Positions 3,315 to 62,030 are shown, counted from the first letter of the stretch. The stretch is DNA of 64,000 nucleotides from Obrimoposthia wandeli (GCA_977020255.1 CDROCS010001802.1:124001-188000); one strand, 5' to 3'. The notes: a model not told the origin generated them from the sequence alone. Numbers and translations: made by a program.

Positions 3315-3340
3315 AATTATCTCTTTTTATTTATAATAAT

Positions 3341-5016: not shown

Positions 5017-5042
5017 AATTATCTCTTTTTGTTTATAATAAT

Positions 5043-5070
5043 ATTGTATTTGATTTAAGAATATTGTCAA
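5043..5070 (-). promoter_or_regulatory. sigma70-like promoter TTGACA-N16-TACAAT
   Basis: ttgaca atattcttaaatcaaa tacaat on the minus strand. Confidence 0.7.
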
Positions 5071-5138
5071 AACACTATATTTTAAGAATAAAAAAGAGCG
5101 ATAGTTAATCACTCTTTATATTATTGATGAATTAATCT

Positions 5139-6398: not shown

Positions 6399-6424
6399 AA
6401 TTGTCTCTTTTTATCTATAACATT

Positions 6425-6452
6425 ATTGTATTTTATTTAGTGATATTGTCAA
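6425..6452 (-). promoter_or_regulatory. sigma70-like promoter TTGACA-N16-TACAAT
   Basis: ttgaca atatcactaaataaaa tacaat on the minus strand. Confidence 0.7.
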
Positions 6453-6544
6453 AATAGTATTTTTATAAATATTTTTATAAATATTTTTTCAAATAAAAAA
6501 GAGCAATATATTATCACTCTTTTTATTATTTATAATTTTATTTT

Positions 6545-8575: not shown

Positions 8576-8600
8576 AATCATCTCTTTTGTTTATAATAAT

Positions 8601-8628
8601 ATTATATTTCATATAAAATAATTGTCAA
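8601..8628 (-). promoter_or_regulatory. sigma70-like promoter TTGACA-N16-TATAAT
   Basis: ttgaca attattttatatgaaa tataat on the minus strand. Confidence 0.7.
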
Positions 8629-8666
8629 AAATCAAATTATTTTAATCACTAAATAAATTATTATCA

Positions 8667-15786: not shown

Positions 15787-15810
15787 AAACAAACAATAAA
15801 TAGGTGACAA

Positions 15811-21064: not shown

Positions 21065-21835
21065 TTAATCAATTATAAATTCAACATATCTTTTCTTTCC
21101 AGTATTTGGATCTAAATCAACACTTAAATCAATGTCTCCGTTATTTCTTCTAACATCTTCATATTCAAATTTTAAACCATCTGCAAAATACTTATTTTTT
21201 CCAGTAATAAATTTAAATTTGAATGTCCCTTCATAGTAGCTTAATCGTCTATAAGTTGATGATATTCTTTTATCGTCATTCCAATAAATCTTATCTGGTG
21301 CTCCTACTATCATATCTTCGTGTTCCATTAAATTACCATAATCAATGATAAAATCAGGTCCCATTGGGTTAGAAATTTTTAATTCATATATTTTCTTTGA
21401 ATATTCATTTAGTTCTAATAAAGTATCAAAACTAAGAACATTATAACTATACATATAATCAATGACGGTTGTTCTTTCTGAACCTTCTATGTACTTTAGG
21501 ACTTGTACTGTTTCTTTTTCTTCATCAACTTCAAATCCTAAATCACGAATATACTTAATAGTTAAAGCCAATTTTTCTTTTCGGGATTCTTCTTTTTTTA
21601 ATTCTCTATTTTTAATAAACTCAAGACCTTTATCATAATCTCTTTTGATAAGAATTCGTTCTTCTTCTGTTTTTGAAGGAATAACCTTTGATTCATTTAC
21701 GAATTTTTTAGCTTCAACTTTAGGTGTATCTAGAGTTGGGGGGCTTTTAGGTACACTCGATTGATTGAGCAAGGAATAGATACCTCCACCGATGAGAGAG
21801 ATTGCTAATATTGAAATAATTACCTTTTTGATCAT
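21065..21835 (-). CDS. Membrane-anchored or secreted protein, near-duplicate of 28185-28961
   Basis: About 90% identical over the first ~164 aa and the last 21 aa, with a divergent block between. Confidence 0.85.
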   Translation of the reverse strand: MIKKVIISILAISLIGGGIYSLLNQSSVPKSPPTLDTPKVEAKKFVNESKVIPSKTEEERILIKRDYDKGLEFIKNRELKKEESRKEKLALTIKYIRDLGFEVDEEKETVQVLKYIEGSERTTVIDYMYSYNVLSFDTLLELNEYSKKIYELKISNPMGPDFIIDYGNLMEHEDMIVGAPDKIYWNDDKRISSTYRRLSYYEGTFKFKFITGKNKYFADGLKFEYEDVRRNNGDIDLSVDLDPNTGKKRYVEFIID

Positions 21836-22012: not shown

Positions 22013-25000
22013 TTATTTATATATAATTATTTCTCTTCCATCCTTTTTTAATTTATAAAAAGAACTCATTTCAACAAACTCATAAGAAGGATAAGTATGC
22101 TCTGTAATTAATGGTGTGTCTATTCCTACATATTTAATTGAAACTTTTTCAACATTAAAGAACGGATTAAGTACAACAGAGGACGTAATATTAACATTTT
22201 TACCTGACAACAAACTAAACGTTGAATCAGTAGTAATGTTCATATCGTCATTACCTGTAATTTTTGTTCCATAACCTATAATATTGATATCGGATTTACC
22301 ATCTAAAGTAATGTCACAATGAGCTGTTGAGTTAATAACATTATTTTCGCTATGAAAAATAAGTTCAGCAGAACCATTATTTAATGAAATATCTGCATTT
22401 CCTACAATATCAAAGTTTAATTTTTCATTAGAAAAATTGTTATTCTTAAATACAACGCTACCTGTTGATTTTATTGTCCCTGAACCTCTTTTGTTATCCT
22501 CTCCATATGTTCCGTAATCTTGAAGAATATCGTATCCATTTATAATAGCATTACCAGTTCCCAGACTTATATTAAAATTATTTAAATTAGTTAAATTTAT
22601 AATGGAGTCTCCATTTAATAAAACGGCTTTCAAATCGACAGGTCGATCATCTTCTCCAATAACATTTATATTTTTAATACCAGTTCCAACATTTAAATTA
22701 ATATTTTCAAAATTAGATATACCTAAAGTTATTTTGCCATCACCTAATTTTGCAGTGAAATCGCCTCGTTTTGCAATGAAATCGCCTCGTTCTTCTATTC
22801 CAGAATCAGCATTTATTATTTTATCACCATTTTTTGATGTAATATTTACAATCTTATAGTTATTTGATTCAATATTTAATACTTCAGTGCTCGGTGTTAT
22901 ATTTAAAATACCATTACTACCTTCTTTTATTGTTTTAAAGGTTTGTGAACCATCGTTAGAAACAATATTAATATCTTGAACATTTAATAGCTTAAAATCT
23001 AAATTACGTTCACCTAAATCAGTAGTTAATTTTTCGGCACGTTTAATATCTACAGTTTGAACTCCTGATATCCCAGTTAAAACAATATCCTTATAATCTG
23101 ATATGATTATTGTTGCATCTGTTTCACTTAGATTAGCATTGAAAGATTCATTTGTTCGAGTTGCTTCATCTGTTTTTACTGCCGTAATATTTTGAGTTCC
23201 TGTTCCAAATGTTAATTCTACATTTGTATAATCTTCAAGAGAAATCACAGCATCACCTTCTAAAAATTTTGTTTTTAAAGATGTTTTATTTAATGCTTTT
23301 CCAGTTAGTATATTATTACCCTTAATCGAATTAATTGTATATTTATTAAAAAATGAATGATTCAATGTTTTATCACTCTTTTCAATATTTATATTGTTAT
23401 TTCCTTCTCCAAGATTTATTTCACCTGTGAATGTTATATTTTCGAATTTTAGAGTTTTATTTCCTTTTTCAAAGTTAAACTTTACATCATTTATATAACT
23501 ATTTTTAATATCCATAGTGTCATTGCCACTGTACAACTCGAAATCAATTAAATTTAATTGAGAATTTGATATCGTGATTTTGTCAATATCTTGTGTGTTT
23601 TTACTGCCTCTTATATAATCTCTATCTGAAATATTATCACTTGTGGCTTTAATATAATTTTCAAAATTAACTATATTATTTCCTTCACCCAATGAAACAT
23701 CTAATTTATTACCATAGTTATATAGATTTAATGTATCATCACCTGTTCCTGCCGTTAAATCTAATGACGTGTTATTGAATGAAAACTCATTGTTTCCACC
23801 CGAATCTATAAATACATTAGAAAACTCTAAAGAAGTATTAGAGACATTAACAATATCCTTATCAATACCAGAAATGACATTTAAATTATAATTAGATGAA
23901 GTTAATGTATTTTCACCATTCCCAAGATTAATATCAGCAGTAGCATTAGATACTTTAGATGAATTATAACTACTCCCAATAAGGTTTACGATGTCGTTAC
24001 CGCCATTTAAATAAAGGTCGGTATTATATTTTTCAATATGAATATTGTCAATTCCCGCACCGCCATTTATTTTCACTAGCGAACCACCAATTTGATTACC
24101 ATCAATATCTTTTACACTATAATTTATATGTCCAAGAGAATTAATAATAGAGGCAGTATTGTTTCCTTCACCTAAATCAATATCAAAGTTAATAAAATTA
24201 TTAATATTAACAGTATCATTTCCACCAAAGGTTTTAATAATATCTGGTTTTGATTTATACAATTCATAAGAACTGTAATAAGAATTATTAGGGTCATATT
24301 TTATATTATTAGAATATATGGTTTCATTTCCTCCATTACCAGTATAGTCATTAGAAAAATATGTATTTAAATGTGTAACATTATTATCAGATGTAGATAT
24401 AATGTTATTTATAGGTGTAACTTTGTTAATCATATCGGAAAGTTTTATAGTTTTAGATATGTTTTCAAAATGTAAATTAACGTCAAACTTAGACCACTTT
24501 TTAAAATACATTCCAAAAAAATCATCAATTTTTAAAAAATTATTACCATCTATTGCTATAATTAAATCATTTTTACTCTCTTCCGAACTTGTACCTGATT
24601 TAAATGTGATATTATTAGAAGTTACTTCTCCCTCTATAATGACATTAATACCTTCATTCTCTGTATCTACATTATAGTTTTCATTCTGATCTCTATAGTT
24701 TGCCAATTCATCTTGAATAATTTGCAATATTCGATCTTCTTCATTAGCATCATCTTCAATTTTTTTTAATTCTTCAAGCCTTTTTAATTCCTCAAGAACT
24801 TCGTTATCAACAGGCTCTTCATTGTCAACAGGCTCTTCATTGTCAACAGGCTCTTCATTATCAACAGGCTCATCATTGTCAACAGGCTCATCATTGTCAA
24901 CAGGCTCTTCATTGTCAACAGGTTCTTCGTTATCAACAGGTTCTTCGTTGTCAACAGGTTCTTCGGTGCAATCATTTCCTGCACAGATTTCTTTTTCTGT

Positions 25001-25087
25001 ATCGTTACTGTAGTTTGATGCTTTTTCGTTACAACCGACCAATAGGATTGCAAAAGACAACAAAATTACTTTAATTATATTTCTCAT
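22013..25087 (-). CDS. Large lipoprotein with EEPVDN repeats and Gly/Asn-rich RTX-like or beta-roll repeats (adhesin-like)
   Basis: Lipobox LLVGC; (E/D)EPVDN x9; repeated (D/N)LGxGNNxxxI and GGxGxDxI motifs. Confidence 0.8.
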   Translation of the reverse strand: MRNIIKVILLSFAILLVGCNEKASNYSNDTEKEICAGNDCTEEPVDNEEPVDNEEPVDNEEPVDNDEPVDNDEPVDNEEPVDNEEPVDNEEPVDNEVLEELKRLEELKKIEDDANEEDRILQIIQDELANYRDQNENYNVDTENEGINVIIEGEVTSNNITFKSGTSSEESKNDLIIAIDGNNFLKIDDFFGMYFKKWSKFDVNLHFENISKTIKLSDMINKVTPINNIISTSDNNVTHLNTYFSNDYTGNGGNETIYSNNIKYDPNNSYYSSYELYKSKPDIIKTFGGNDTVNINNFINFDIDLGEGNNTASIINSLGHINYSVKDIDGNQIGGSLVKINGGAGIDNIHIEKYNTDLYLNGGNDIVNLIGSSYNSSKVSNATADINLGNGENTLTSSNYNLNVISGIDKDIVNVSNTSLEFSNVFIDSGGNNEFSFNNTSLDLTAGTGDDTLNLYNYGNKLDVSLGEGNNIVNFENYIKATSDNISDRDYIRGSKNTQDIDKITISNSQLNLIDFELYSGNDTMDIKNSYINDVKFNFEKGNKTLKFENITFTGEINLGEGNNNINIEKSDKTLNHSFFNKYTINSIKGNNILTGKALNKTSLKTKFLEGDAVISLEDYTNVELTFGTGTQNITAVKTDEATRTNESFNANLSETDATIIISDYKDIVLTGISGVQTVDIKRAEKLTTDLGERNLDFKLLNVQDINIVSNDGSQTFKTIKEGSNGILNITPSTEVLNIESNNYKIVNITSKNGDKIINADSGIEERGDFIAKRGDFTAKLGDGKITLGISNFENINLNVGTGIKNINVIGEDDRPVDLKAVLLNGDSIINLTNLNNFNISLGTGNAIINGYDILQDYGTYGEDNKRGSGTIKSTGSVVFKNNNFSNEKLNFDIVGNADISLNNGSAELIFHSENNVINSTAHCDITLDGKSDINIIGYGTKITGNDDMNITTDSTFSLLSGKNVNITSSVVLNPFFNVEKVSIKYVGIDTPLITEHTYPSYEFVEMSSFYKLKKDGREIIIYK
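24803..24964. repeat. 18-bp tandem repeat x9 encoding (E/D)EPVDN
   Basis: Unit (r)TT(r)TCAACAGG(y)TC(t/a)TC on the plus strand; in-frame linker just after the lipobox. Confidence 0.95.
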
Positions 25088-28184: not shown

Positions 28185-28961
28185 TTAATCAATTATAAAC
28201 TCAACATATCTTTTCTTGCCCGTATTTGGATCTAAATCAATACTTAAATCAACTTTTTTTAGAGATTCACCCTTTTCTAATTTTGAACCCTTATATTTGA
28301 AATTTAAATTTTTAAAATTTTCAACCTTTATTATATTTAATTCAAAATTTCTACTATTTATCGCTAATGTTCTGCCATGTGACAATATACTGTCACCATT
28401 ATTTAATAAAATATTATCTGGGCTGCCGACTATCAGGTTTTTTTGATTTTTTATTAAATTATCATACGATATAATAAAATCAGAACCCATTGGATTAGGT
28501 ATTTTTAATTCATATATTTTATTTGAATATTCATTTAGTTCTAATAAAGTATTAAAACTAAGAACATTATAACTATACATATAATCAATGACGGTTGTTC
28601 TTTCTGAACCTTCTATATATTTCAAAGCTTGCACTGTTTCTTTTTCTTCATCTACTTCAAATCCTAAATCACGAATATACTTAATAGTTAAATCCAATTT
28701 TTCTTTTCGGGTTTCTTCTTTTTTCAATTCTCTATTTTTAATAAACTCAAGACCCTTATCATAATCTCTTTTAACAAGAATGCGTTCTTCTTCTGTTTTT
28801 GAGGGAGGCACAGTCGATTCATCTACAAATTTTTTAGCTTCGACTTTTGGGGATTCTGGAGTGGGGGGGCTTTTAGGTACACTCGATTGATTGAGCAAGA
28901 AGTAGATACCTCCACCGATGAGAGAGATTGCTAATATTGAAATAATTACCTTTTTGATCAT
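28185..28961 (-). CDS. Membrane-anchored or secreted protein, near-duplicate of 21065-21835
   Basis: See paralog; identical end DLDPNTGKKRYVEFIID. Confidence 0.85.
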   Translation of the reverse strand: MIKKVIISILAISLIGGGIYFLLNQSSVPKSPPTPESPKVEAKKFVDESTVPPSKTEEERILVKRDYDKGLEFIKNRELKKEETRKEKLDLTIKYIRDLGFEVDEEKETVQALKYIEGSERTTVIDYMYSYNVLSFNTLLELNEYSNKIYELKIPNPMGSDFIISYDNLIKNQKNLIVGSPDNILLNNGDSILSHGRTLAINSRNFELNIIKVENFKNLNFKYKGSKLEKGESLKKVDLSIDLDPNTGKKRYVEFIID

Positions 28962-38182: not shown

Positions 38183-38923
38183 TTGATGAAAAAAATAATA
38201 TTTTACATGGCTTTACTGTTTGTGATTGCGATTGTCATTATAAGCAAGTTTAATAGTGGTGAAAATAAATCTACAAATTATGTAAATAATGCGTGTAGTA
38301 TGTTAAAAGAAAATCCTGACTGGTATCTTTCTCTTAAAAGTTCAGAAAAGAAATGGAAAACTCCAATTCATATACAGCTTGGTATGATTAGGCAGGAATC
38401 AGCTTTCAAACACGATGCGAAGCCGAAAAGAGAAAATAAATGGCACGAATTTGGTAGTAATTATCAATCAAGCGCAGTTGGATATTCTCAAGCTTTAAAT
38501 GGTACGTGGGATCACTATTTAAAAAATACCCAAAGTATATTAAAAGATCGCCAATCATTTAAAGATGCAACTGATTTTATCGGTTGGTATAACGATAAGA
38601 CCAATAAGAAAAATAAAATAGCATTTAATGATCCGAAGGGATTATATCTTAATTATCATGAGGGTTGGAGAGGATATAAGAAAAAAAGTTATGAAGAAAA
38701 ACATTTTTTAAAAAAAGCATCTTCAAATGTTATTAATTGGTCAAAGAAATATAAAGAACAATTAAAGGGTTGTAAATTAACAGGAGAACCAGATATTTAT
38801 TTTATGTTATCTGTTTATGCTGACCACCTTGTTGTTGGCTTAGGTTATTTGTGGGTTGCAATTGTATTTATAGCAGAATGTTTATTCTCTGTTGTTACTT
38901 TTATTTATCATTTACTTGTATAG
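38183..38923 (+). CDS. Lytic transglycosylase (SLT-like)
   Basis: N-terminal TM; MIRQESAF (catalytic Glu), SSAVGYSQAL, DFIGWY, YLNYHEG. Confidence 0.85.
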   Translation: MMKKIIFYMALLFVIAIVIISKFNSGENKSTNYVNNACSMLKENPDWYLSLKSSEKKWKTPIHIQLGMIRQESAFKHDAKPKRENKWHEFGSNYQSSAVGYSQALNGTWDHYLKNTQSILKDRQSFKDATDFIGWYNDKTNKKNKIAFNDPKGLYLNYHEGWRGYKKKSYEEKHFLKKASSNVINWSKKYKEQLKGCKLTGEPDIYFMLSVYADHLVVGLGYLWVAIVFIAECLFSVVTFIYHLLV

Positions 38924-38931
38924 GAGTTATA

Positions 38932-40071
38932 ATGTTTAAAACAATCTTAAACGCTAAAATAAAACATCTTGTTTTTAATAACTTATCAAGTTTTAATGTT
39001 AGATTCGTAGATGGTTATTCACCAGTTGTAAATAATAAAAAACGTTTGTTTGCTCATAGTGATTATAACGATATTAAACAATTTAAGACATCAATGAAAG
39101 GTGATGTCTTAAGTTTTAATTCAGGGATAATGATGAGTGACAATCAACTTGTTTTAAATATTGAAGGTATAGAAACAATTACTTTTAATGGCACATATGC
39201 AGATGTTTCAGATTGTTGTGATGAAACAAATAAATCTAAATATTTTGTAAATGGTTCTGCTGTAAATATTTTAAAAATTAATAGGGAAGTATTTAAAATA
39301 TCCTCGTGTTCTGGAAGTATTAAATTATTAAATGCTGTTATAAATGATTTTTATTTTGATTTAAAAAATGCTTCACTATCAATCAATGGATATTTTATAA
39401 ATAAGGTTTCTTCATATTTATCTGATGGTTCTAAGGTCTCGTTGAGGGAAGGTTTCATACATAAATTAGATGTTACTTTAAAAAACTCTAAATTAAAAAC
39501 AGATGATCAATCGGGAAAAGAAACTTTTGTTTATAACGCAAACATAAATCTTTGTTCAAAATCAAAAGTAGAACTTTCAGTGCTCTATTATGTAAATTAT
39601 CATTTAAACTCTGTTGGTGATATTATGGATATTAATGGCACGAAAAAAGAAATTATTCTAGATATTGAAGATAAAGGTAGTTTTAAAGGTAATTATTATG
39701 ATTATTTCGGGCTGATAGATATGGATTCCGAATCAAAATTTACTATTAATGAATGTTTTAGAACTTGTGATCTGGTGTATCCGACAAAATTAGCAGAACT
39801 AAGTGACTCTAAATCTATTACTTATGAATGTAATCAAGCGGAAAAAAGAAAAGAACAAAAGAAAATAACAGAATATTTGTTTTTCAAAGAAATACTGGGT
39901 AGCGAATATCCGACTGATCTAATAACCCCACAAAATAGAGATTGTTTTTTGGAAATATTAGAAAAATCTTTTAATGGAGAGATTGAACTTTCTGATGAAG
40001 AGGTTTATAATAGGGATAAACTTAATGTTCTATTTGGACGTAAATATACAAAAAGCGCTGTGATTTTTTAA
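38932..40071 (+). CDS. Paralog family A member 3
   Basis: Start re-set to ATG 38932 (AGGAG RBS); C-terminus ILGSEYPTDLITPQNR...NRDKLNVLFGRKYTKSAVIF. Confidence 0.7.
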   Translation: MFKTILNAKIKHLVFNNLSSFNVRFVDGYSPVVNNKKRLFAHSDYNDIKQFKTSMKGDVLSFNSGIMMSDNQLVLNIEGIETITFNGTYADVSDCCDETNKSKYFVNGSAVNILKINREVFKISSCSGSIKLLNAVINDFYFDLKNASLSINGYFINKVSSYLSDGSKVSLREGFIHKLDVTLKNSKLKTDDQSGKETFVYNANINLCSKSKVELSVLYYVNYHLNSVGDIMDINGTKKEIILDIEDKGSFKGNYYDYFGLIDMDSESKFTINECFRTCDLVYPTKLAELSDSKSITYECNQAEKRKEQKKITEYLFFKEILGSEYPTDLITPQNRDCFLEILEKSFNGEIELSDEEVYNRDKLNVLFGRKYTKSAVIF

Positions 40072-43853: not shown

Positions 43854-45155
43854 GTGGGGAAAATTATGTTTTCGAGAAAAAAGACAACGCATCTTGTGAT
43901 TGAAAATTTTGATAATAAAATGACAATTTTTAATGAAGAGATAAAATCTATTTTTATTGATCAAGAGAAGGACAATAAAGAAGATGTCTATGACAACGGT
44001 ATTAACTTAAAATTAAAGAAATATTTTAAAACATCGAGAAAGGGGGATAAATTAGTATTATCTTTTTTAAAAAAGAAGTTTACAGATGATTTTAGAAACA
44101 AAGAAATGGTTGATGTCATATTCAACTTATATGGTTATGAAAAAATAACTTTTATAGATTCAGAGATAAAAATAAAAGATACTTGTACGTCTAAAAACAG
44201 AACTAATATTTGTTTAAAGAATACAACGATGTCAATATCTTCATTAAGAAGAAAAGCGCTATCTGTCTCATTAGAGAAATCCAATATAAGATTTCTTAGT
44301 GATACCGCACTAAATTTTTTACATTTAACATCTTCATTTTCTAAAGTAAAAACCTACGGAAAATTTTTAGTAGAAGCTCTATCGCTAAATGAAGTTAATA
44401 ATAGCAATATAGCAATTAATGAAGGTTATATTAATCACCTATATGGAACAATGGAAGATTCTGTTTTTGGAACTTTAAATACAAGCTCTTTGGGTATGGT
44501 ATCGGTTTCTATTAAGGGTAAAAGTGAAGTATCAATGAATGTTTTAAACAACATAAGATATTCATTAGAATCAGATTCTTATTTAGAAATAAAGGGAAAT
44601 GTACCAGTTCATAATGAAGGTGATGAAAAAAATGAAATCAATGTAGAAAGAAAATGGGAAGATACTTCTTTATTTGATAAAAAATTACTATCATCAGTAG
44701 CATTTTCGCAAGAGTTACGTTCTTGTATTAAAGATTCTTTTTTTTATAGCGAAATTTCATACCCTTCCAATTTAGATATCATTGTTGAAGATAATATTAC
44801 AAATAAAATAAATGAAAATATATTGTCTGAAAATGAGGCTAAAGCGAACGTAGACTCAATCTTAGCGATTGTTACTAACGAATTGAATAAGAGCAAGGCT
44901 AATCAAGATAAGCTTATCTATGAAGTTCGAGAGCCTACCATAGATGAAAGAGAAGATGTAAAAAATATAAAGTATATCTTGTCAAATAAAAACCCTGCTC
45001 ATTATATAACAAATAACAATAAAGAAGAATTGATAAATGTATTAAAAATATTAATTGTCGAGAAAATAAAACTAAATGAATTACAACAATTAAACCTCGA
45101 TAAATTATGCTTCCTATTTGATATAAAAAAACGAAAAAACGAAGTCGAATATTAG
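43854..45155 (+). CDS. Paralog family A member 4 (most divergent)
   Basis: MFSRKKTTHLVI start; C-terminus ILSNKNPAHYITNNNK...NLDKLCFLFDIK. Confidence 0.7.
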   Translation: MGKIMFSRKKTTHLVIENFDNKMTIFNEEIKSIFIDQEKDNKEDVYDNGINLKLKKYFKTSRKGDKLVLSFLKKKFTDDFRNKEMVDVIFNLYGYEKITFIDSEIKIKDTCTSKNRTNICLKNTTMSISSLRRKALSVSLEKSNIRFLSDTALNFLHLTSSFSKVKTYGKFLVEALSLNEVNNSNIAINEGYINHLYGTMEDSVFGTLNTSSLGMVSVSIKGKSEVSMNVLNNIRYSLESDSYLEIKGNVPVHNEGDEKNEINVERKWEDTSLFDKKLLSSVAFSQELRSCIKDSFFYSEISYPSNLDIIVEDNITNKINENILSENEAKANVDSILAIVTNELNKSKANQDKLIYEVREPTIDEREDVKNIKYILSNKNPAHYITNNNKEELINVLKILIVEKIKLNELQQLNLDKLCFLFDIKKRKNEVEY

Positions 45156-45186
45156 TAAATAAATACTGTAAAATAGCGATAAACAG

Positions 45187-45215
45187 TTGCTTTAGTTGCG
45201 TTTTTTTGTTATAAT
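45187..45215 (+). promoter_or_regulatory. sigma70-like promoter TTGCTT-N17-TATAAT for sRNA candidate 1
   Basis: Exact 17-nt spacer; predicted TSS coincides with the start of the closing stem. Confidence 0.7.
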
Positions 45216-45220
45216 ATCTT

Positions 45221-45302
45221 TGTTAGCTCGCTAGGTGAAACGTGTTTTTTTTACTAATGATGAATAGTCTTTAAGACTTCGTAGTAACTTAACGAGCTAA
45301 TG
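45221..45302 (+). ncRNA. Candidate small structured RNA, copy 1
   Basis: Closing stem ttagctcg/cgagctaa; conserved GGTGAAACGTGTTTTTT and TAGTAACTT; internal hairpin ttacta...agtct-tta-agact...tagtaa. Confidence 0.65.
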
Positions 45303-45407
45303 TTTTCCTATCAATATCTCCAAATAAAGGGATTTAATCAAAATCCCATCTATGAAAAAATCCAAAAAAAATATATCAAATAAAGCATTCTTTTATGCAA
45401 AAAAAGA

Positions 45408-45436
45408 TTGTATTAAAACTCAAAACATGTTATAAT
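45408..45436 (+). promoter_or_regulatory. sigma70-like promoter TTGTAT-N17-TATAAT for sRNA candidate 2
   Basis: Exact 17-nt spacer; TSS predicted at the stem start. Confidence 0.7.
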
Positions 45437-45441
45437 TACAA

Positions 45442-45531
45442 TGTTGGTCGTTGGGTGAAACGTGTTTTTTGAATAGTTCTTGAATTATTATAGAGCTGAA
45501 AAACTATAGCCTAGTAACTTAACGACCAACA
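45442..45531 (+). ncRNA. Candidate small structured RNA, copy 2
   Basis: Perfect 11-bp closing stem tgttggtcgtt/aacgaccaaca; the same two conserved blocks; a different internal hairpin. Confidence 0.65.
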
Positions 45532-45554
45532 ATCCAATAAAAATAGATGCTATA

Positions 45555-45666
45555 TGTATACAAAACGAAAGAAAGTATACATATAATATTTACGTGTATA
45601 CAAAACGAAAGAAAGTATACATATAATATTTACGTGTATACAAAACGAAAGAAAGTATACATATAA
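45555..45666. repeat. 40-bp perfect tandem repeat x2.8 with an internal palindrome
   Basis: Unit tgtatacaaaacgaaagaaagtatacatataatatttacg starting at 45555, 45595 and 45635. Confidence 0.95.
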
Positions 45667-45764
45667 CAATTCCAACAAAAAAGAAACATTTTCAGAGAAA
45701 TATCCAATATCCAATATTAAAAACAAAAAAAAGATAACTTATTCGTTATCTTATTTATTTTTGA

Positions 45765-50634: not shown

Positions 50635-51204
50635 TTAAAATGTATATGTTGCTTCAACATTAAACATATAAGCATGAAAACCCATCGTTCTTATTTTAGG
50701 AGAAACTTGTAATCCTTTATATTTTAAGAAGTTAGGACTATATTTTAATGCAAGTAGTGGTACGACCATCCAATCTCCTACAAATGAATTTGATTGAAGT
50801 ACGTCTGAATTATAGCCATTAGAAAGACCTATACCAACTTGTACACCAAAATCATAGAATGACAATAAATCATGCTCAATACTAAACATTTCTGAATCTT
50901 CGAAATAAGAGTTGTAAAAAGAAGAGTAACCCAATGTCATTGTTCCACTTCTTATTGCTATGGAACGCAATTCATTATCTTCGTTATAATCAGTCTTTAT
51001 ACCATATTCACTTACATATGTTGCATCAGAATGATCTGTGTATAAGTTTAACTCTGTTCCTATTGATATATCATCCATATCTAATCTAAATGAGTTTAGA
51101 AAATCTTCTTTTTCGATTGTTCCTTTTTCTTCTTCATGGGCTATTTCATTAGCCATTGTGCTCAACGATGTCATTGACGTTAGTAGTAGTATCCATTTAT
51201 ACAT
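50635..51204 (-). CDS. Small outer-membrane beta-barrel-like protein (PagP-like, tentative)
   Basis: Signal peptide; alternating strands; C-terminal FNVEATYTF ending in Phe. Confidence 0.6.
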   Translation of the reverse strand: MYKWILLLTSMTSLSTMANEIAHEEEKGTIEKEDFLNSFRLDMDDISIGTELNLYTDHSDATYVSEYGIKTDYNEDNELRSIAIRSGTMTLGYSSFYNSYFEDSEMFSIEHDLLSFYDFGVQVGIGLSNGYNSDVLQSNSFVGDWMVVPLLALKYSPNFLKYKGLQVSPKIRTMGFHAYMFNVEATYTF

Positions 51205-51500
51205 TTTATGTTTCCTTTTAATAAAAACGACACTTTAAATTGATATCATTCTTAAAAAATCTTACAAATGAAAAATAATACAAATCATATTTTTTTCTCA
51301 ATCAATAGGAATTATTTTTATTTAACTATTATAAAATGTGATTATTTTTTATAAATAAATAAGTAATTTTAAATATGAAAGGTCTATTTTATTCTTTATT
51401 TACTGTGAAAAATAAGAATTGGGTATTAATTTTTAATATCTTTAATAAATTAGAAATGTTATAATAGAAAACGTTTTTTAATTTAAGAGGAAGAAATAAA

Positions 51501-51782
51501 ATGAGTGATTCAAAAATTATTGATTTAAACCTATATAGAGATGGTGGTTCATTTGCATTTACATTTGAAAAAGCAGAATATGAATGTATGACAGGTTTGT
51601 TTATATTAGAGTCGAAAGGAACTGTAGTAGTAGACACTGTATTGGTAAAAAAAATCATTGATGCATTTTCAGTTCAGTTAGATTCAGATGATGAGTTTAA
51701 TAAGTTGATGAGAGGTCGAGTTAATGAATTAGCCAGATACTTGATGACACTGGAAAAGATCCATTCAGAATTAGTAAAATAA
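51501..51782 (+). CDS. Hypothetical protein
   Basis: 93 aa with a GAGG RBS. Confidence 0.7.
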   Translation: MSDSKIIDLNLYRDGGSFAFTFEKAEYECMTGLFILESKGTVVVDTVLVKKIIDAFSVQLDSDDEFNKLMRGRVNELARYLMTLEKIHSELVK

Positions 51783-51944
51783 TATTGAAGAAAAAGCTAT
51801 TTTGTATTGACTTCTATTTAATATTGATATAAAATATGTTTGATAGCTCTGACCTCTTACGCCTTTATGGTATTGACATCAGTAGCGAATGTAGAAGTAG
51901 ATTGAAGTTCGTTAATAAAGTTTTAAATTAAATTAAGATTTCTA

Positions 51945-51973
51945 TTGACATAAAAGATTCTTTGGTCTATAAT
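51945..51973 (+). promoter_or_regulatory. Perfect consensus sigma70 promoter TTGACA-N17-TATAAT driving tmRNA
   Basis: ttgaca taaaagattctttggtc tataat. Confidence 0.9.
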
Positions 51974-51979
51974 GTATAT

Positions 51980-52320
51980 CTGATTGGTTGATGCGGAACT
52001 CAACTTTTCTGGACAAGGGTTCAAATCCCTTCAGCTCCACCAAAAGTACATTTAGTAAATCGAGTTACGATTACTAGTATGTTAGCGGTTAAGTGTATTT
52101 TTGATGGGGCTGTTCTGGAATCGACAGGATTGAGCGGTGATGTGGACAATTCAAGAGGAAATAACTCTTGTAAATAAAGTTAAAAAACGAATAATATCTA
52201 ACGATAATTCATTTGAAGGTGCTGCCTTAGCTGCGTAAGCCCTTCCGAGGTGTAAGAAGCCTTGTTACCAAATATCATAGGTTTTGCGAAAGGTTAGCTT
52301 GCTAATTAATCAATGAACCG
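51980..52320 (+). ncRNA. ssrA: Circularly permuted two-piece tmRNA: acceptor piece ~51980-52042, intervening segment 52043-52105, coding piece 52106-~52320; tag (A)SNDNSFEGAALAA at 52197-52238
   Basis: T-arm plus 3' end GGACAAGGGTTCAAATCCCTTCAGCTCCACCA lies upstream of the 5' end GGGGCTGTTCTGGAATCGAC. Acceptor stem GGGGCTG/CAGCTCC has G3:U70. The tag ORF ends LAA-stop. The intervening segment has complementary ends. Confidence 0.93.
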
Positions 52321-52326
52321 ACTTAG

Positions 52327-52348
52327 AACCACCTTCGGGTGGTTTTTT
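52327..52348 (+). terminator. Intrinsic terminator with a cUUCGg loop
   Basis: aaccacc-ttcg-ggtggtttttt. Confidence 0.9.
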
Positions 52349-52372
52349 GCTTTTATAAATAGAGGAAATTAA

Positions 52373-52660
52373 ATGTCTAAAGAAACAGATATGGAATACG
52401 GTGAAGTTGTTTATACAACTTTGACAGGAATAACAAATGTTGTAAAGGTAATTATTTACAATGATAGAGATAGTTATGCGACTCAATTAATACATAGTGG
52501 AACTTTGTATCTATACACAAAACAAGATCTTGAATATAAAAGTGATGTTAAAGGATCACCTTTAAATAGATATGAATCAGTTTATTTCAATGGTGTTCTT
52601 ATTTATAAAGCGTCAATAATTAAAAAGATATTAAACTATTTTAAATCGAATGTTTTATAA
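52373..52660 (+). CDS. Hypothetical protein
   Basis: 95 aa with a GAGG RBS. Confidence 0.7.
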   Translation: MSKETDMEYGEVVYTTLTGITNVVKVIIYNDRDSYATQLIHSGTLYLYTKQDLEYKSDVKGSPLNRYESVYFNGVLIYKASIIKKILNYFKSNVL

Positions 52661-52700
52661 ATATTAAATTAAGGGTTATTTATATTTTGATAAACAGCTC

Positions 52701-54317
52701 TTAATTTTTATTTATATATATTTGACACAGATTGATAATAGTAATTTTTTCAGCATCGTCTAAATCAAAATTAGATAAAATAAGATCAATATTGTCTATA
52801 GCATCAAAGATAAAGTAATCTAAACCTCTTTCGCCTAAAATATCAACATTAAAACATTCAGTTCCTCCTCCACATTTTTTTAAGACTTTACTCATGTGTT
52901 TTTGATCTTTTTTATATTTTAACAAAACCCAATATTCAGCCAATCCAGAAATAATGTTGTTGACTTCTTTAATTTCATATTTTTTAATTACAACATTATC
53001 TTTTTCTAAATTATTTTTAGAAAACCGATAATTTATATTATGCTTTGTTAATCCTATTTTGTAAAAAGATTTCCCCTTGTATTTAAAATCTACATAGTAT
53101 AGGAATCTTTTATCTTCATAAAAAACTTTGTTATTAATTAACATTTTTAGATTTCTTGTGATACTAGAGCAAATAGGACAACCTGAACCATTTTTTAAAT
53201 TGAGGGCATCTGGAATCCAAGGCTTATTAAATAGTGCTCCATTGCCATGAATATGACAGGAAACATTACAAGATGTTTTTCTTAAATTAGTGTATTTACC
53301 TCTAAAACTCAAAAAATTATAATTATTCAATTTAGCTTGAATTAAGATTTCTTTAAGTGACTCTTTTTCATTTAATTCATAATTTCCAGAACATTTTGGG
53401 CATGTTGTACCTCGTGTTAAATTGTCAAAATCGGGTTGCCATTTATTATCCCATTTGTTACCTTCACCGTGAATATTACATTTTACAATACATCTGGTTC
53501 TTACATTTTTAAAATTATCATTTTTAAAGCCTAAGAATTCGATATTTGTGTTCTTTAGTTTTTCATTTAATCTTTTTATCGCATCTTCTTTTTTCAATAA
53601 AGAATAATGTGGCTGACCATTACAGTCAGGACATTTAAAACCAACAATAGAAAAAGAATTTATTCTCTTTATTTTTGGTATTTTCCATTGATCGCTTCTT
53701 CCATGTTTGCTACAGGTTACTATAATTTTTGTTTTATTGACATTCTCATAAAATCCCTTTTCAAAAGAATGAAACTTTATATTTGATGTTTCTCTTGTTC
53801 TTAATTTAAAATTTTCAAAAAATCTTTTTTCAGCTTTAGAAATTAATTTATTATTATTTTTAAAAGGAGATTTCTTTCTGTTTTTATGAGCACATTTGCT
53901 GCAACTTACACCTCTTGTTAACGTCTCGAAACTTGGGAAACTTGGGTTTTCAAAATCAGATAATTTTCCGTGGGTTTTGCATTCAATTAAACATTTAGTT
54001 TTTTTACCTTCATACTTCCCGTTTAAAAAACCTAAAAAGGTCAATCCCTCTTTTAATTTTTCTTTTAATACCATACCAGCTTCTTCTGTACTTGGTTTAT
54101 AATTTTTTTTACATTTTGGACAGCCAGATCCGTTAATTAAATTAGAATAAGTAGGAATCCACCTATTACCCCATTCAGCCCCATATCCGTGTATATCACA
54201 CATTACAAAGCATTTACCTTTTTGTGTTCTTAATTCACCATCAACGAATCCAAGAAATGATAATAAAGTGTTGGAAAACAATTTATTTATATTATTTATA
54301 TAACTTTGATTTTTAAT
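52701..54317 (-). CDS. Putative homing endonuclease: tandem Zn-ribbon (CxxHG...GCPxC, DUF723-like) repeats plus a C-terminal GIY-YIG/T5orf172-like domain
   Basis: Five C-x2-HG...C-P/S-x-C units; LYYV...YKIGLTK...RF...E...TECF. The ORF track starts at TTG 54281; the frame is open to an ATT at 54317 behind an AGGAG. Confidence 0.7.
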   Translation of the reverse strand: MKNQSYINNINKLFSNTLLSFLGFVDGELRTQKGKCFVMCDIHGYGAEWGNRWIPTYSNLINGSGCPKCKKNYKPSTEEAGMVLKEKLKEGLTFLGFLNGKYEGKKTKCLIECKTHGKLSDFENPSFPSFETLTRGVSCSKCAHKNRKKSPFKNNNKLISKAEKRFFENFKLRTRETSNIKFHSFEKGFYENVNKTKIIVTCSKHGRSDQWKIPKIKRINSFSIVGFKCPDCNGQPHYSLLKKEDAIKRLNEKLKNTNIEFLGFKNDNFKNVRTRCIVKCNIHGEGNKWDNKWQPDFDNLTRGTTCPKCSGNYELNEKESLKEILIQAKLNNYNFLSFRGKYTNLRKTSCNVSCHIHGNGALFNKPWIPDALNLKNGSGCPICSSITRNLKMLINNKVFYEDKRFLYYVDFKYKGKSFYKIGLTKHNINYRFSKNNLEKDNVVIKKYEIKEVNNIISGLAEYWVLLKYKKDQKHMSKVLKKCGGGTECFNVDILGERGLDYFIFDAIDNIDLILSNFDLDDAEKITIINLCQIYINKN

Positions 54318-57447: not shown

Positions 57448-58903
57448 CGACTCAAAAGCAAGAACACCCATTCCTTCAGGTATGGGATGAATTGCTAGTA
57501 AATTAGGCTAATTTATCTTTTTATTGATTTCTCAATGTTTTTGTTGACATTTCAATGGGAACCATTATTATTGTCAACATGATAACAATTAGAAATCTGG
57601 TCAAAACCAGTCATCACAACTATAAAAATATTAAACGTGCCTGTCGAAATACAAGTGCTATTTTTAATTGTGCTAATTATATTATGAGACAATCTTTTTT
57701 CGATGGTGATATGAGAAAATGGAATAGTGTTGATAAACAATTAAAAAACTTAAATCCCATATATCAAACTAACCCAAGTGCCGCTTCTCAAACAACAATA
57801 AAACGATTAGGTGAAGATTGGGAGTCTTTTAGAAAAGGGGTTGAAGATTTTAAAAACAATTCTTCAAAATACAAGAAAAGACCCAAGCCTCCTGCTTATT
57901 CTAAAAATTTAAAAACATACATTCAACCCGCTCAAGGCTTTAAAATACTTGACGGGTTTATTCACTTTCCAAAAATATTGGAACTTGAACCAATGAAAAT
58001 TTTTAATATAGAAGATAAAAAAAGTGGAAAAAACGGAAAAACAAGTGAGATTCGTTTTGTCCCTCACGGTCATTGTTTCTGGGTTGAAGTCATTTTCGAT
58101 GATGTCGAACAAGTAGAAAACAACCAGAAAGACATCAAATTAAACAAAGAAAACCATATTGCTATTGATTTAGGGATAGATAATCTTTTAACTATTATTT
58201 CAAATGTAGACACGGTAAAACCGATTCTCATTAAAGGAAGAATTATTAAATCTATAAATCAACAATACAATAAGAAAAAAGCTTTTTTTCAAAGCCAAAA
58301 TAACAAACCTATGGTAGATAAAATTGGGGTACAACGTTATCTTAAAATACAAGATTATATGCACAAATCATCCAATAAAGTAATTCAACATTGCTTGAAA
58401 AATGACATTGGGACAATTGTTATTGGTAAAAATGATAATTGGAAAGATGAAATAAATATTGGTCGAGTAAATAATCAAAAATTTGTAAGTATTCCGTTTC
58501 AAAGTCTTATTTCAAAAATAGAATATAAAGCCGAAAAAATAGGTATTAAAGTGATTATTCAAGAAGAGTCTTACACATCTAAAAGTGATGCATTAGCCCT
58601 TGATAATTTACCGAAATATAAAAAAGGCAACAAGAAAAAACACGTATTTTTGGGTAAAAGAAAAAAACGTGGTTTGTATCAATCTTCGATTGGAAAGTTG
58701 GTCAATGCGGATATTAATGGAGCGATTAATATCTTAAGAAAAGTAATTGGCGATGGTTTTGTAAAAAACCTAGTTAATAAGGGGTTAGTCTTCAACCCCG
58801 AAGTCATTGCGTTGCAATAACTTCGAGATGAAAACAGAAAATTTAGATTGTATCTCTATCTTTTTTGTTTCAAGCACCGTCCTTCAGGTCGGTTGTATTT
58901 GAC
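57448..58903 (+). mobile_element. Non-autonomous IS200/IS605-family (IS1341-like, tnpB-only) element, 1456 bp, inserted 3' of TTAT
   Basis: Subterminal hairpins cccat-t-cc-TTCA-gg-t-atggg (57467-57486) and accg-t-cc-TTCA-gg-t-cggt (58876-58893). Right end ...TGAC. No target duplication. Removal restores the host ORF. Confidence 0.88.
57555..58820 (+). CDS. tnpB: TnpB RNA-guided endonuclease (RuvC with relocated catalytic Glu)
   Basis: RuvC-I IAIDLGIDN; IVIGKNDNWK at the canonical RuvC-II site; QEESYTSK; RuvC-III NADINGAINI. The start may be the internal MITIRN. Confidence 0.92.
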   Translation: MGTIIIVNMITIRNLVKTSHHNYKNIKRACRNTSAIFNCANYIMRQSFFDGDMRKWNSVDKQLKNLNPIYQTNPSAASQTTIKRLGEDWESFRKGVEDFKNNSSKYKKRPKPPAYSKNLKTYIQPAQGFKILDGFIHFPKILELEPMKIFNIEDKKSGKNGKTSEIRFVPHGHCFWVEVIFDDVEQVENNQKDIKLNKENHIAIDLGIDNLLTIISNVDTVKPILIKGRIIKSINQQYNKKKAFFQSQNNKPMVDKIGVQRYLKIQDYMHKSSNKVIQHCLKNDIGTIVIGKNDNWKDEINIGRVNNQKFVSIPFQSLISKIEYKAEKIGIKVIIQEESYTSKSDALALDNLPKYKKGNKKKHVFLGKRKKRGLYQSSIGKLVNADINGAINILRKVIGDGFVKNLVNKGLVFNPEVIALQ

Positions 58904-59774: not shown

Positions 59775-60335
59775 ATGAAATTAAATCAAAAATTAGTAGA
59801 ATTATTCGATAAAGTATTTAGTAAGTCCGAGAAATCAGAAATGGCAGATATGTTTAATCTTTCAGTGGAAGAAGTAAGTAAAATTAATTCATCATCTGAT
59901 ATTAATATTTTAGAATCAATTTCACTTATTCATTCTAAAAATTCACAAGAATCATTAATTGAAAAAACAAATATTACAAAAGAAACTTTACTTGAGATGA
60001 ATCAAATTGTCCATATCTTTAATTTTGAACCAGAGTTAGTTCCAATTATTGGTATTACGGGACTAATTGACCATAAAGCAAAAAAAATAACATTCGAAAA
60101 CAATGGTGAAGTTGCTATAGTTAACTTTGAAAGTTATGATGAATGGGGTGCTTTTGAAATGTCAGGAAGTTTGTTTGACTATCAAATTTTACTTGATGAT
60201 AAGCTTTCACTTTGTATTTATGGTCTTATTTCAAATGGTGAAGGAAAGCCAATGAGTACAAATCATAGTCAAGAGATTGTGCTCGATTTTGACGAAATCA
60301 ATGATATGCCAGAAATGTTTTCACAATATCAATAA
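59775..60335 (+). CDS. Hypothetical acidic protein
   Basis: 186 aa with an AAGG RBS. Confidence 0.7.
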   Translation: MKLNQKLVELFDKVFSKSEKSEMADMFNLSVEEVSKINSSSDINILESISLIHSKNSQESLIEKTNITKETLLEMNQIVHIFNFEPELVPIIGITGLIDHKAKKITFENNGEVAIVNFESYDEWGAFEMSGSLFDYQILLDDKLSLCIYGLISNGEGKPMSTNHSQEIVLDFDEINDMPEMFSQYQ

Positions 60336-60352
60336 CAAATAGGATTTAAAAT

Positions 60353-60604
60353 ATGTATAAATTAGAAGAAGTATCTTTAGATGATGCAATTGCTGAATGT
60401 TCTGATGGTGAGGAAGTTTATTTTAGAATTTCTGAATTAAAGGGGCAATGGGTAATTGATAATAAAACAAGTGTACATATCCAAACAGAGATTATTGAAG
60501 ATGACGGAAAATCCATTGAAAAGGAAATTTCGTATATTCGAGTGAATAGTCACGAAGAGTTTGAGGATGGGAATCAGAAAACCTACATCTGGAAAGAGGT
60601 ATAA
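60353..60604 (+). CDS. Hypothetical protein
   Basis: 83 aa with an AGGA RBS; terminator gtcacc-gaaa-ggtggc downstream. Confidence 0.7.
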   Translation: MYKLEEVSLDDAIAECSDGEEVYFRISELKGQWVIDNKTSVHIQTEIIEDDGKSIEKEISYIRVNSHEEFEDGNQKTYIWKEV

Positions 60605-60703
60605 GTATAAGTCACCGAAAGGTGGCTTTTTTATTTAATTATTAAATATTTTTGTTTTTTTTAATATGAGGTATATAATAGATTAATTAATTAGGAGTTA
60701 TAT

Positions 60704-60943
60704 ATGGATTCATTTTTTCAAAGAAAGGAAGTAAAAGACGTATTGTTAAGTAGAGGAAAAGAATCGAGGAATATAGGTTCTTCGTTTTCAGCGGGAGATA
60801 AAAATGGACTTTTCACTAGAGAATATATTTCTTGGCAAGTTCGTAGTGCTCGGACAAAAGTTACAATGCACCTTAACGATGATGAGAGGGTTGCTTGGTT
60901 TAGAGATAATCCAGAACCACAAAACAAATATAAAAAAGTTTAA
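60704..60943 (+). CDS. Small hypothetical protein, tandem paralog 1
   Basis: MDSFFQRKEVKDVLLSRG... with an AGGAG RBS. Confidence 0.8.
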   Translation: MDSFFQRKEVKDVLLSRGKESRNIGSSFSAGDKNGLFTREYISWQVRSARTKVTMHLNDDERVAWFRDNPEPQNKYKKV

Positions 60944-60956
60944 TAGCGAGGTACTT

Positions 60957-61193
60957 ATGGATTCATTTTTTCAAAAAAAAGAAGTAAAAGACGTTTTGTT
61001 AAGTAGAGCAAAAAGTTCGAACAAAGTTGGATCATCCTTCTCAGGAAGCGATGAAAATGGAACGTTTACTAGGGAATACCTTTCTTGGCAACTTCATTGT
61101 GTTTGGGCAAAAGTTACAGTGCATCTTAACGATGAAGAAAGAGTAGCTTGGTTTGCAGAACATCCAGAGCCTCAAAACAAGTATGAAAAGTAG
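60957..61193 (+). CDS. Small hypothetical protein, tandem paralog 2
   Basis: Start re-set to ATG 60957 (GAGG RBS); MDSFFQKKEVKDVLLSRA... Confidence 0.8.
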   Translation: MDSFFQKKEVKDVLLSRAKSSNKVGSSFSGSDENGTFTREYLSWQLHCVWAKVTVHLNDEERVAWFAEHPEPQNKYEK

Positions 61194-61202
61194 AATAGTG
61201 AA

Positions 61203-62030
61203 ATGATTTTAAAAAAACAATCTTTTAAAAATAAAGATTTCTTATTTAAATATGCATTAAAAATAGTTAATGCTAATATGATATTCTTTTATAACCCACC
61301 GAAAGAAGATTATTTTACAATAGAGATGTTTATAGATAACTCATTTGAAGATTTAGTTAGCTCATTTAATGGTTACACAGCTAATGCTGTTCAGATAGAA
61401 CCAATAAAAGATAATAAAAACCTATTTGAAAAAGAGAAAATAAATAATACAGCAACATTTGGTTTAACTAATTTACTTGAAGTTGTATTTTTAGATGAAA
61501 AAAGAAAATTATACGAATTAAAGAAAACATTGACAAAATATTTATTAATGAAGAAATTAATCCATAATTTTACTTCTTCAGGTTCTTTCAATTATAAAGC
61601 ATTAAAAGAAACTAAAACGAAAATAGATAAGATGATTTATCACCTTGATCAATTAAATGGCTATAATATTGTAACTCGCTTAAAACCGACATTGGTAAAA
61701 GACAATTATTTAGAAATGAATAATATGTCTATTCCTGTCTCACCATTTAGTAATAGCCAAGTGTTTTATCTGTTAAATAAAGAAACAAAAGAAATCAGAG
61801 AATATAGAATAACATCTCTTGAATATCCATTTGATAAAGATAAATTAGGTAACTATCAGGCAAATATTGTTTATAAATTAACATCTTTAATTGATTCATT
61901 TGATTTGTTATTATCAGAAATAGACGGTGTTCAGGGTTTGTCAATTTATGAGGGTAGGTTTGATCAGCATACAAATGAGACTGATTTATATTTATTTACA
62001 GAAAAGAATGAAGCGTTAAATTTTCTATAA
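61203..62030 (+). CDS. Hypothetical protein, paralog family B
   Basis: C-terminal LFTEKNEALNFL motif. Confidence 0.7.
   Translation: MILKKQSFKNKDFLFKYALKIVNANMIFFYNPPKEDYFTIEMFIDNSFEDLVSSFNGYTANAVQIEPIKDNKNLFEKEKINNTATFGLTNLLEVVFLDEKRKLYELKKTLTKYLLMKKLIHNFTSSGSFNYKALKETKTKIDKMIYHLDQLNGYNIVTRLKPTLVKDNYLEMNNMSIPVSPFSNSQVFYLLNKETKEIREYRITSLEYPFDKDKLGNYQANIVYKLTSLIDSFDLLLSEIDGVQGLSIYEGRFDQHTNETDLYLFTEKNEALNFL

Follow-up and report, generated by a model that had tools for sequence, protein, structure and literature searches.

A divergent circularly permuted two-piece tmRNA gene in a very AT-rich stretch of DNA from Obrimoposthia wandeli

The subject of this report is a single gene in a 64,000-nucleotide stretch of DNA from Obrimoposthia wandeli (GCA_977020255.1, contig CDROCS010001802.1, positions 124001–188000), referred to below as the window and numbered from its first letter. 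The region 51945–52352 on the plus strand is a complete, intact-looking gene for a circularly permuted two-piece transfer-messenger RNA (tmRNA, ssrA). The gene looks functional, comes closest to the ‘beta’ subtype of permuted tmRNAs and has very probably inherited its permutation from the known pool of beta-type and phage-circulating genes, rather than being newly permuted. Below, we describe the gene, the evidence for its structure and its coding frame, and then turn to its surroundings and its origin.

Layout of the gene

The elements of the gene, all on the plus strand, follow one another in the order promoter, tRNA-like 3′ half ending in ACCA, spacer, tRNA-like 5′ half, helix 2, pseudoknot 1 (PK1) hairpin, tag, 3′ hairpin and terminator. 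The layout is permuted in that the T arm, the 3′ strand of the acceptor stem and the CCA precede the 5′ half, which follows beyond the spacer on the same strand. The promoter (51945–51973) is of the sigma-70 type, TTGACA-17-TATAAT, and matches the consensus at 12 of 12 positions, with a predicted start at about 51979–51981. Perfect TTGACA-N16–18-TATAAT sites occur four times in the window, where shuffling predicts 0.2; consensus sigma-70 promoters are thus genuinely in use here, and the beta_tmRNA consensus in Rfam has its −35 and −10 boxes at the position aligned with this promoter. So perfect a promoter suggests high expression. A transcription start near 51980 would put the primary 5′ end almost at the 5′ end of the acceptor piece. 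At the far end of the gene lies an intrinsic terminator (52325–52352, with the hairpin at 52325–52346), comprising a 9-bp stem, a TTCG loop and a T run; it is present in the minimum free energy (MFE) fold and is the sole terminator-like site within 51000–53000. The gene therefore has its own promoter and its own terminator, as a preliminary description of the stretch, made from the sequence alone, had proposed. Near-identical terminator hairpins with the core CACC-TTCG-GGTG are found at 52326 (the tmRNA terminator itself), 57009, 59538 and 60609, one with a GAAA loop.

The predicted acceptor piece, about 63 nt long (51980–52042), is delimited by the Rfam alignments, by RNAalifold on 11 sequences, by a covariance model of ten relatives and by covariation across 57 distinct relatives. 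It contains the 3′-side strands of helix 2 (51982–51986, 51993–51994, 51999–52003 and 52007–52011), the T stem-loop (52015–52031, loop TTCAAAT), the 3′ strand of the acceptor stem (52032–52038), the discriminator A52039 and the encoded CCA (52040–52042). A 63-nt spacer (52043–52105) follows, which would be removed on maturation. Its ends, 52043–52052 and 52092–52105, form a helix that prolongs the acceptor stem in the precursor. This helix appears in the single-sequence MFE fold and shows compensatory changes (alignment A4, columns 68–79 with 126–137); in alignment A6, where it is helix 3, its pairing reaches 99% and both partners have changed in 12 pairs. The tetranucleotide TGAT precedes GGGG in 100 of 121 sequences but reflects pairing with ACCA and so is not counted as evidence of common descent.

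The predicted coding piece (52106–52296) begins at G1, the probable site of RNase P cleavage, and its conserved part ends near 52284–52296: the beta_tmRNA model ends at 52296, whilst homology with relatives runs to about 52284. The mature 3′ end could lie as far downstream as the terminator. The piece opens with the tRNA-like 5′ half (52106–52150), made up of the 5′ strand of the acceptor stem, GGGGCTG (52106–52112), in which G3 (52108) pairs with U70 (52036), a D-loop analogue (52113–52124) and the 5′-side strands of helix 2 (52125–52150). The PK1 region (52152–52182) has as its stem 1 the hairpin CAAGAG/CTCTTG (52152–52157 with 52165–52170); both Rfam models position a hairpin here, and the hairpin of the relatives at the same site differs in sequence. 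An A-rich stretch then separates the PK1 hairpin from the tag reading frame (52197–52235), which is closed by a TAA stop codon (52236–52238). In the 3′ domain (52239–52284), a hairpin (52253–52257 with 52275–52279) carries CCTTGTTACCAAA in its loop at 52260–52272, and a further short helix or pseudoknot stem may tentatively be drawn between 52247–52250 and 52260–52263.

The anatomy proposed in the preliminary description is confirmed except for a single helix. The promoter, the T arm running into ACCA at 52042, the 63-nt spacer with pairing ends, the GGGGCTG 5′ end with G3:U70, helix 2 and the terminator of the preliminary description are all present, and its PK1-like caagag/ctcttg pairing is the hairpin at 52152–52170 that both Rfam models match. 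One element did not survive, a pairing of the precursor termini (tgattggttg/taattaatca). The core of the 5′ segment in question, 51982–51986, pairs instead with 52146–52150 to form distal helix 2, as seen in the Rfam consensus and in the covariation of 51983–51986 with 52147–52150 (AU/GC, UA/CG and GC/CG exchanges), and because helix 2 uses that segment the terminal pairing is rejected.

Covariation, tag frame and resume codon

The identification of the gene rests on covariance models. The Rfam family RF04321 (tmRNA_permuted), a merged model described together with the three forms of tmRNA gene (PMC11915505), gives 95.2 bits at 51982–52238 on the plus strand, its gathering score being 47 and E, calculated over the full window, 3.6e-17. 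The match spans model positions 1–213 of 213 and is the sole above-threshold Rfam match (release 15) in the 64-kb window. A second covariance model, built from ten relatives on viral contigs alone with the present gene left out, matches 51979–52152 with 117.9 bits (E about 1e-25); the full model is covered, and the match takes in the acceptor piece, the base of the spacer and helix 2. Between them, these two scores confirm the permuted two-piece tmRNA that the preliminary description had placed here. The G+C content (GC) of the gene region is about 38–42% against a background of 27%, as expected for a structured RNA under selection.

Relatives were sought in IMG/VR contigs with the degenerate pattern ‘T arm, CCA, 40–70 nt, GGGG…TCGAC’, and at least 120 contigs match this permuted tmRNA pattern. 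RNAalifold, run on the present gene and ten relatives, predicts the T arm, the acceptor stem, the spacer hairpin, both parts of helix 2 and the 3′ hairpin, with compensatory changes in 26 of the 42 pairs; the 3′ hairpin covaries in these 11 sequences. A larger covariation set was assembled from 62 matches of the ten-relative covariance model, 57 of them distinct. Across the 57, standard pairs fill 97.9% of cells, 22 of the 32 pairs are changed on both sides, and compensatory changes are seen in the T arm, acceptor stem, helix 2 and spacer hairpin. None of 500 column shuffles reached the observed covariation values, and sliding the partners by one to three columns lowers pairing to 37–54%. The alignment was fitted to the covariance model, which favours structure, but with so large an effect and such values in the slid controls there is little doubt that the structure is real. 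Helix 2 is 93.7% paired, with compensatory changes in six of its seven pairs, and the G3:U70 pair is G:U in 56 of the 57 distinct relatives. All invariant positions of the tRNA-like domain are kept in the present gene, and its precursor folds better than dinucleotide shuffles (z = −3.1).

The tag frame encodes SNDNSFEGAALAA, so that the complete tag would be (A)SNDNSFEGAALAA; the frame is open and has the usual …ALAA end followed by a stop codon. Codon by codon it can be aligned with the relatives' tags, given by ARAGORN as ANDEVYALAA, ANDAQFALAA, ANDNNFAHGDFALAA and others. On this alignment the resume codon is TCT (52197–52199), that is, serine UCU, as the preliminary description had suspected. 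The reading is borne out by the upstream context and by the spacing: the family's −5 U (90%), −4 A (91%) and −3 A (84%) are all present before TCT, the distance from TCGAC to the resume codon is 71 nt (63–89 nt in relatives) and the tag has 13 residues (10–15 in relatives). An in-frame AAA at 52176, directly 3′ of the PK1 hairpin, was also tried as resume codon. Its fit to the −6 to −1 motif is better, but it lies 50 nt from TCGAC and would give a tag of 20 residues, both outside the ranges of the relatives, and it was rejected. Serine UCU is thus the best-supported reading of the resume codon, one shared by none of the 97 relatives compared, and the only real oddity of the gene. A TCT at the aligned position is also found in the IMG/VR relative L104 (4723–5082), where, however, a GCA codon precedes it and the aligned tag frame reads A-S-N-D-E-V-F-A-L-A-A; ARAGORN places the tag of this relative far downstream of the aligned frame, and the covariance models detect the gene.

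How such an RNA would work can be outlined from established two-piece tmRNA biology (Keiler et al. 2000 and Sharkady & Williams 2004, to the extent that they are cited in PMC11915505 and PMC9004378). A single precursor would be transcribed from about 51980 and cut by RNase P at G52106, and its 3′ end trimmed to the encoded CCA at A52042, the spacer being discarded. The acceptor stem and helix 2 would keep the resulting acceptor piece (about 63 nt) and coding piece (180–245 nt) attached to each other. Alanyl-tRNA synthetase would charge the RNA with alanine through G3:U70, and SmpB, encoded outside the window, would bring it to stalled ribosomes. Translation would then resume on the tag frame, adding (A)SNDNSFEGAALAA and marking the protein for proteolysis.

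The surrounding window

GC is 26–32% throughout the window, and open reading frames (ORFs) of at least 60 amino acids cover about 85% of it. Stop codons among 68 non-overlapping ORFs are TAA in 57 cases, TAG in seven and TGA in four. A reassigned TGA codon was considered and rejected: TAA is dominant, but TGA and TGG are used normally, as in the standard genetic code. Family scans (Pfam, PHROGs and NCBIfam) were made on all window ORFs of at least 80 amino acids, and some three quarters of the ORFs are without a family match. No capsid, portal, terminase, tail, integrase, replication, partition or transfer family was found in these scans, the sole hint of a phage hallmark being a weak match to a small-terminase PHROG (E 5e-4).

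Two genes near the tmRNA gene deserve mention. Adjoining and convergent with it is a gene for a CapR/DUF723 protein (52701–54281, minus strand) that resembles the free-standing endonucleases of T4-like and Vibrio phages (25–28% identity, with phage homologues annotated ‘endonuclease’); a full-length homologue with 44% identity lies on 25% GC marine contigs beside RecQ and NifU. Further along is a gene for a TnpB-family RNA-guided endonuclease (57555–58820, plus strand), with no TnpA seen beside it. Its best plasmid matches are in Pseudomonas, Photobacterium and Vibrio (38–46% identity), and no close relative was found in GTDB representative genomes. The window also codes for a DUF285/PARCEL repeat protein, a GGDEF cyclase (for which an exact-protein look-up gave no match), a CoaB–methyltransferase fusion, an aminotransferase, an SLT transglycosylase and a compact ABC-type ATPase. 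Matches to the HlyD_3 and Glyoxalase families were obtained in the scans and are not placed on particular ORFs; the ORFs at 59775–62030 were considered as pieces of ABC/HlyD genes and rejected, since Pfam finds nothing there.

At one end of the window, on the minus strand, five tandem paralogues of 874, 540, 419, 678 and 409 amino acids (690–9896) share an N-terminal part and a fibrinogen-like (GGGWT) C-terminal domain. Their first 200 or so residues are 62–78% identical, they contain internal repeats of about 88 amino acids, and the fibrinogen-like domain is 45–50% identical to fibrinogen-related proteins of oysters, sea cucumbers, corals and lancelets. Relatives of this family are found only on a few metagenome contigs of 27–31% GC. 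One of these (L121) carries a porin and an asparaginyl-tRNA synthetase (AsnRS) 64–67% identical to proteins of Shewanella, Vibrio and Haemophilus, and another (L122) carries an OmpA-like gene. A 1024 amino acid ORF (22013–25087, minus strand) has no Pfam or PHROG match, no homologue at E ≤ 1e-5 in a word-indexed search of 5.8 billion proteins and none in the phage collection (tblastn) or IMG/VR.

Several repeats were seen in passing. A family of four paralogues of 406–438 amino acids, with 22–27% identity, lies at 14500–17127, 38851–40071 and 43854–45155, and a pair of 256 and 258 amino acids (73% identity) at 21065–21835 and 28185–28961. A 609-bp non-coding gap (45156–45764) holds three head-to-tail 40-nt units (45555–45674; two identical, the third 90%), each with TGTATAC…GTATACA and a TATAAT-like box, which may be iterons or operators. 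At 60687–61189 a segment of about 250 nt is duplicated in tandem (78% identity), across the ORFs 60704–60943 and 60804–61193.

Close relatives of the locus were not found in any of the collections searched. Neither the gene nor the 24 kb around it gave a BLAST match to phage and plasmid collections, the exact T-arm/acceptor string does not occur in IMG/VR, and gene-specific patterns found nothing in GTDB representative genomes or Joint Genome Institute (JGI) metagenomes, whilst a looser metagenome pattern returned no more than three unrelated genes of phage type. All window ORFs, compared by tblastn with 120 tmRNA-bearing viral loci, gave no match, and protein-based locus searches with the 1024 amino acid ORF, a paralogue and TnpB found nothing. 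A direct repeat of the 3′ part of the tmRNA, the mark of an integrated island, was likewise not found.

Origin of the gene and nature of the replicon

Two-piece tmRNAs are known from several sources with which the present gene can be compared. The betaproteobacterial form (RF01850, beta_tmRNA; Sharkady & Williams 2004, as cited in PMC9004378 and PMC11915505) has the same order of acceptor piece, spacer and coding piece. Scanned at a permissive threshold, its model aligns over its full length (positions 1–331) with 51931–52296. Shared with the present gene are the promoter boxes, the tRNA-like halves, helix 2, the PK1 hairpin, an xNDxxxxALAA-type tag and the clade-specific loop motif of the 3′ hairpin, CCUUGUUACCAAA. 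The present gene differs in its serine UCU resume codon, where the betaproteobacterial form has GCN, in a terminator about 30 nt further downstream than in the model, and in its very AT-rich genome of 27–29% GC, which offers no evidence of a betaproteobacterial host. The alphaproteobacterial form, known from Caulobacter (RF01849; Keiler et al. 2000, as cited in PMC11915505), shares this permuted tRNA-like domain, and the merged model RF04321 covers it. For the present gene, however, the alpha model scores below the beta model and is removed by clan competition, and the 3′ domain fits the beta consensus. That the element is non-alphaproteobacterial, as had been suggested, is thus plausible, the beta model being the best of its clan and the protein affinities weakly gammaproteobacterial.

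A third source is phages. The preliminary description held that phage-borne tmRNAs are usually one-piece, a view that is now dated: of 133 unique tmRNA genes in cultured phage genomes 53 are two-piece, marine or aquatic phages contributing 50 of these (PMC9004378), and to these can be added the IMG/VR contigs matched by our pattern. Phage two-piece tmRNAs (those of the OM43 phage Melnitz and of pelagimyophages, PMC9004378, and the IMG/VR genes L012, L002 and L053) have the same architecture, covarying helices and spacer hairpin as the present gene, and like it they stand alone with no smpB nearby. In contrast to them, the present gene has no tRNA cluster, shared proteins or phage hallmark genes around it and at most about 60% identity; on IMG/VR contigs of 160–190 kb, by comparison, permuted genes adjoin tRNA clusters (L012 and L002). 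Rfam reported no glutamine riboswitch in the present window, which differs in this from Melnitz. More widely, 11,946 unique permuted sequences have been collected, with sporadic permuted matches in many phyla beyond Alphaproteobacteria, Betaproteobacteria and Cyanobacteria (PMC11915505), and second or third ssrA alleles exist, sometimes plasmid-borne (PMC4131195). Given these reports and the IMG/VR cases, a two-piece tmRNA outside the classical host lineages is not new in kind.

A number of observations weigh against the reading of the gene as a functional, beta-like permuted ssrA. The aligned resume codon is not alanine, whereas GCN is found in 94 of the 97 relatives with a locatable ‘codon, AAY, GAN’ motif. 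Non-alanine resume codons exist in some other bacteria, however, and the identity of the codon is not critical for function, so the serine codon is unusual in the family rather than disabling. Stem 2 of PK1 is weak, a by-eye reading of three to four A–U-rich pairs (52162–52165 with 52179–52182), and the 3′ hairpin has one A–A mismatch. Processing, charging and tagging are all inferred, and no smpB is present among the window ORFs of at least 80 amino acids, as the preliminary description had also noted for the window. ARAGORN calls no tmRNA in the window, and no tRNA either. It calls the permuted gene in nine of the ten relatives; the permuted tmRNA of the IMG/VR locus L070 (10–361) is likewise missed by ARAGORN and detected by the covariance models. 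The best identity to any relative is only about 60%, and Rfam assigns the closest relatives by BLAST (L007 and L112) to the ‘alpha’ type, just over the threshold of that model. Finally, RF01850, though the best-scoring model of its clan, reaches 77.7 bits, below its gathering score of 84, so that membership of beta_tmRNA is not given under Rfam's own rule. Scoring with ARAGORN and Rfam, which the preliminary description had proposed, was therefore negative for the former, above threshold for RF04321 and just under threshold for RF01850. The sub-threshold score, the low identity and the alpha-typed BLAST relatives together make the beta label a soft one.

These same observations can be read in two other ways. 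The low identity to every relative found and the shortfall against the beta gathering score might be taken to mean that a one-piece tmRNA gene was permuted independently, for a fourth time, in the present lineage. The gene order and break point are, however, those of known permuted genes, RF01850 aligns in full, promoter region and 3′ hairpin with the loop motif CCUUGUUACCAAA included, and the model of viral relatives reaches 117.9 bits across acceptor piece, spacer base and helix 2. A separate permutation is made unnecessary by the known gene order and break point and the full-length RF01850 alignment including the 3′ loop motif; it appears unlikely, and as a full explanation we give it only the slightest probability. 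The preliminary description had offered either an independent permutation or a horizontal capture. The former gives way, since the beta-type model is matched throughout and the helices are common to relatives on viral contigs, whilst the latter is plausible. A decaying relic no longer in use, which the non-alanine resume codon, the weak PK1 stem 2, the 3′ hairpin mismatch and the silence of ARAGORN might suggest, is very improbable in view of the perfect promoter and intact terminator, the full set of invariant tRNA-like positions, the open tag frame ending in ALAA and a stop, and the raised GC of the gene region. Inheritance of the permutation from the known beta-type and phage-circulating pool, in a gene that looks fit for use, remains the preferred reading.

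Where such a gene resides is less easily settled. The preliminary description took the element to be non-chromosomal, and this is unproven, since the cellular hints are weak and the high share of ORFs without family matches also fits a very large phage. On one account, somewhat unlikely as it stands, the gene is an accessory ssrA on a very large phage, prophage or other mobile element and depends on the SmpB of its host. The wealth of ORFans and paralogue families, the strong consensus promoters and terminators, the homing-endonuclease-like CapR/DUF723 gene beside the tmRNA with its phage homologues annotated ‘endonuclease’, the SLT transglycosylase, TnpB, several matches to PHROG families of unknown function and the lack of smpB in the window would all fit, as would the five tandem proteins, whose conserved N-terminal part and variable lectin-like C-termini recall sets of receptor-binding proteins by our comparison, and the fact that phage-borne two-piece tmRNAs are common (PMC9004378; IMG/VR). 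Yet no capsid, portal, terminase, tail, integrase, replication or partition gene was detected in the window, its proteins have no match in the 120 tmRNA-bearing viral loci or IMG/VR, the phage and plasmid collections gave no match, no tRNA genes lie nearby and coding density is about 85%. The same want of phage and plasmid hallmark genes in 64 kb would suit a lone chromosomal ssrA that has taken the place of a one-piece gene and is resident in an uncultured AT-rich bacterium belonging to none of the three classical permuted lineages, as would the cellular-type genes of the window (GGDEF cyclase, CoaB fusion, aminotransferase, HlyD-type adaptor match), the five-paralogue relatives on 27–28% GC contigs with AsnRS, porin and OmpA, and the best plasmid matches of TnpB in Pseudomonas, Photobacterium and Vibrio. 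This account is unlikely too, for the window itself has no housekeeping gene, so large a share of ORFs without family match (about three quarters) is more in keeping with a large phage, the AsnRS contig is linked through one paralogous surface-protein family and a similar GC, no homologous tmRNA was found in relatives, and one window cannot show whether another ssrA exists. As a rough split, we would set a cellular genome or an island within one on an equal footing with a large phage or other mobile replicon. Our leaning is to the cellular side, with lateral acquisition of the gene by an uncultured, AT-rich and possibly gammaproteobacterial organism. Such hints as there are, and they are weak, point to a cellular, possibly gammaproteobacterial, host-associated organism. 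It is distinctly unlikely, in our estimate, that a gammaproteobacterium-like lineage, uncultured, very AT-rich and possibly associated with animals, has made this laterally acquired two-piece tmRNA its own ssrA; were it true, there would be a further bacterial lineage with a permuted tmRNA, and one in which a serine resume codon has become fixed.

Whatever its home, the gene, with its permutation very probably inherited, is a divergent addition to an already known permuted type, and its modest weight lies in its serine codon, its invisibility to ARAGORN and BLAST and the barely sampled genome from which it comes. It adds a divergent two-piece tmRNA from an almost unsampled type of genome. ARAGORN and BLAST, the main route to the current tmRNA database (PMC11915505), would miss a gene of this kind, whilst covariance models detect it. 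Ideas on the origin of permuted tmRNAs are left unchanged, the gene fitting the existing beta-type and phage-circulating pool. The serine resume codon is a natural variant at an otherwise nearly fixed position, and as such is of use when considering what sets the resume frame.

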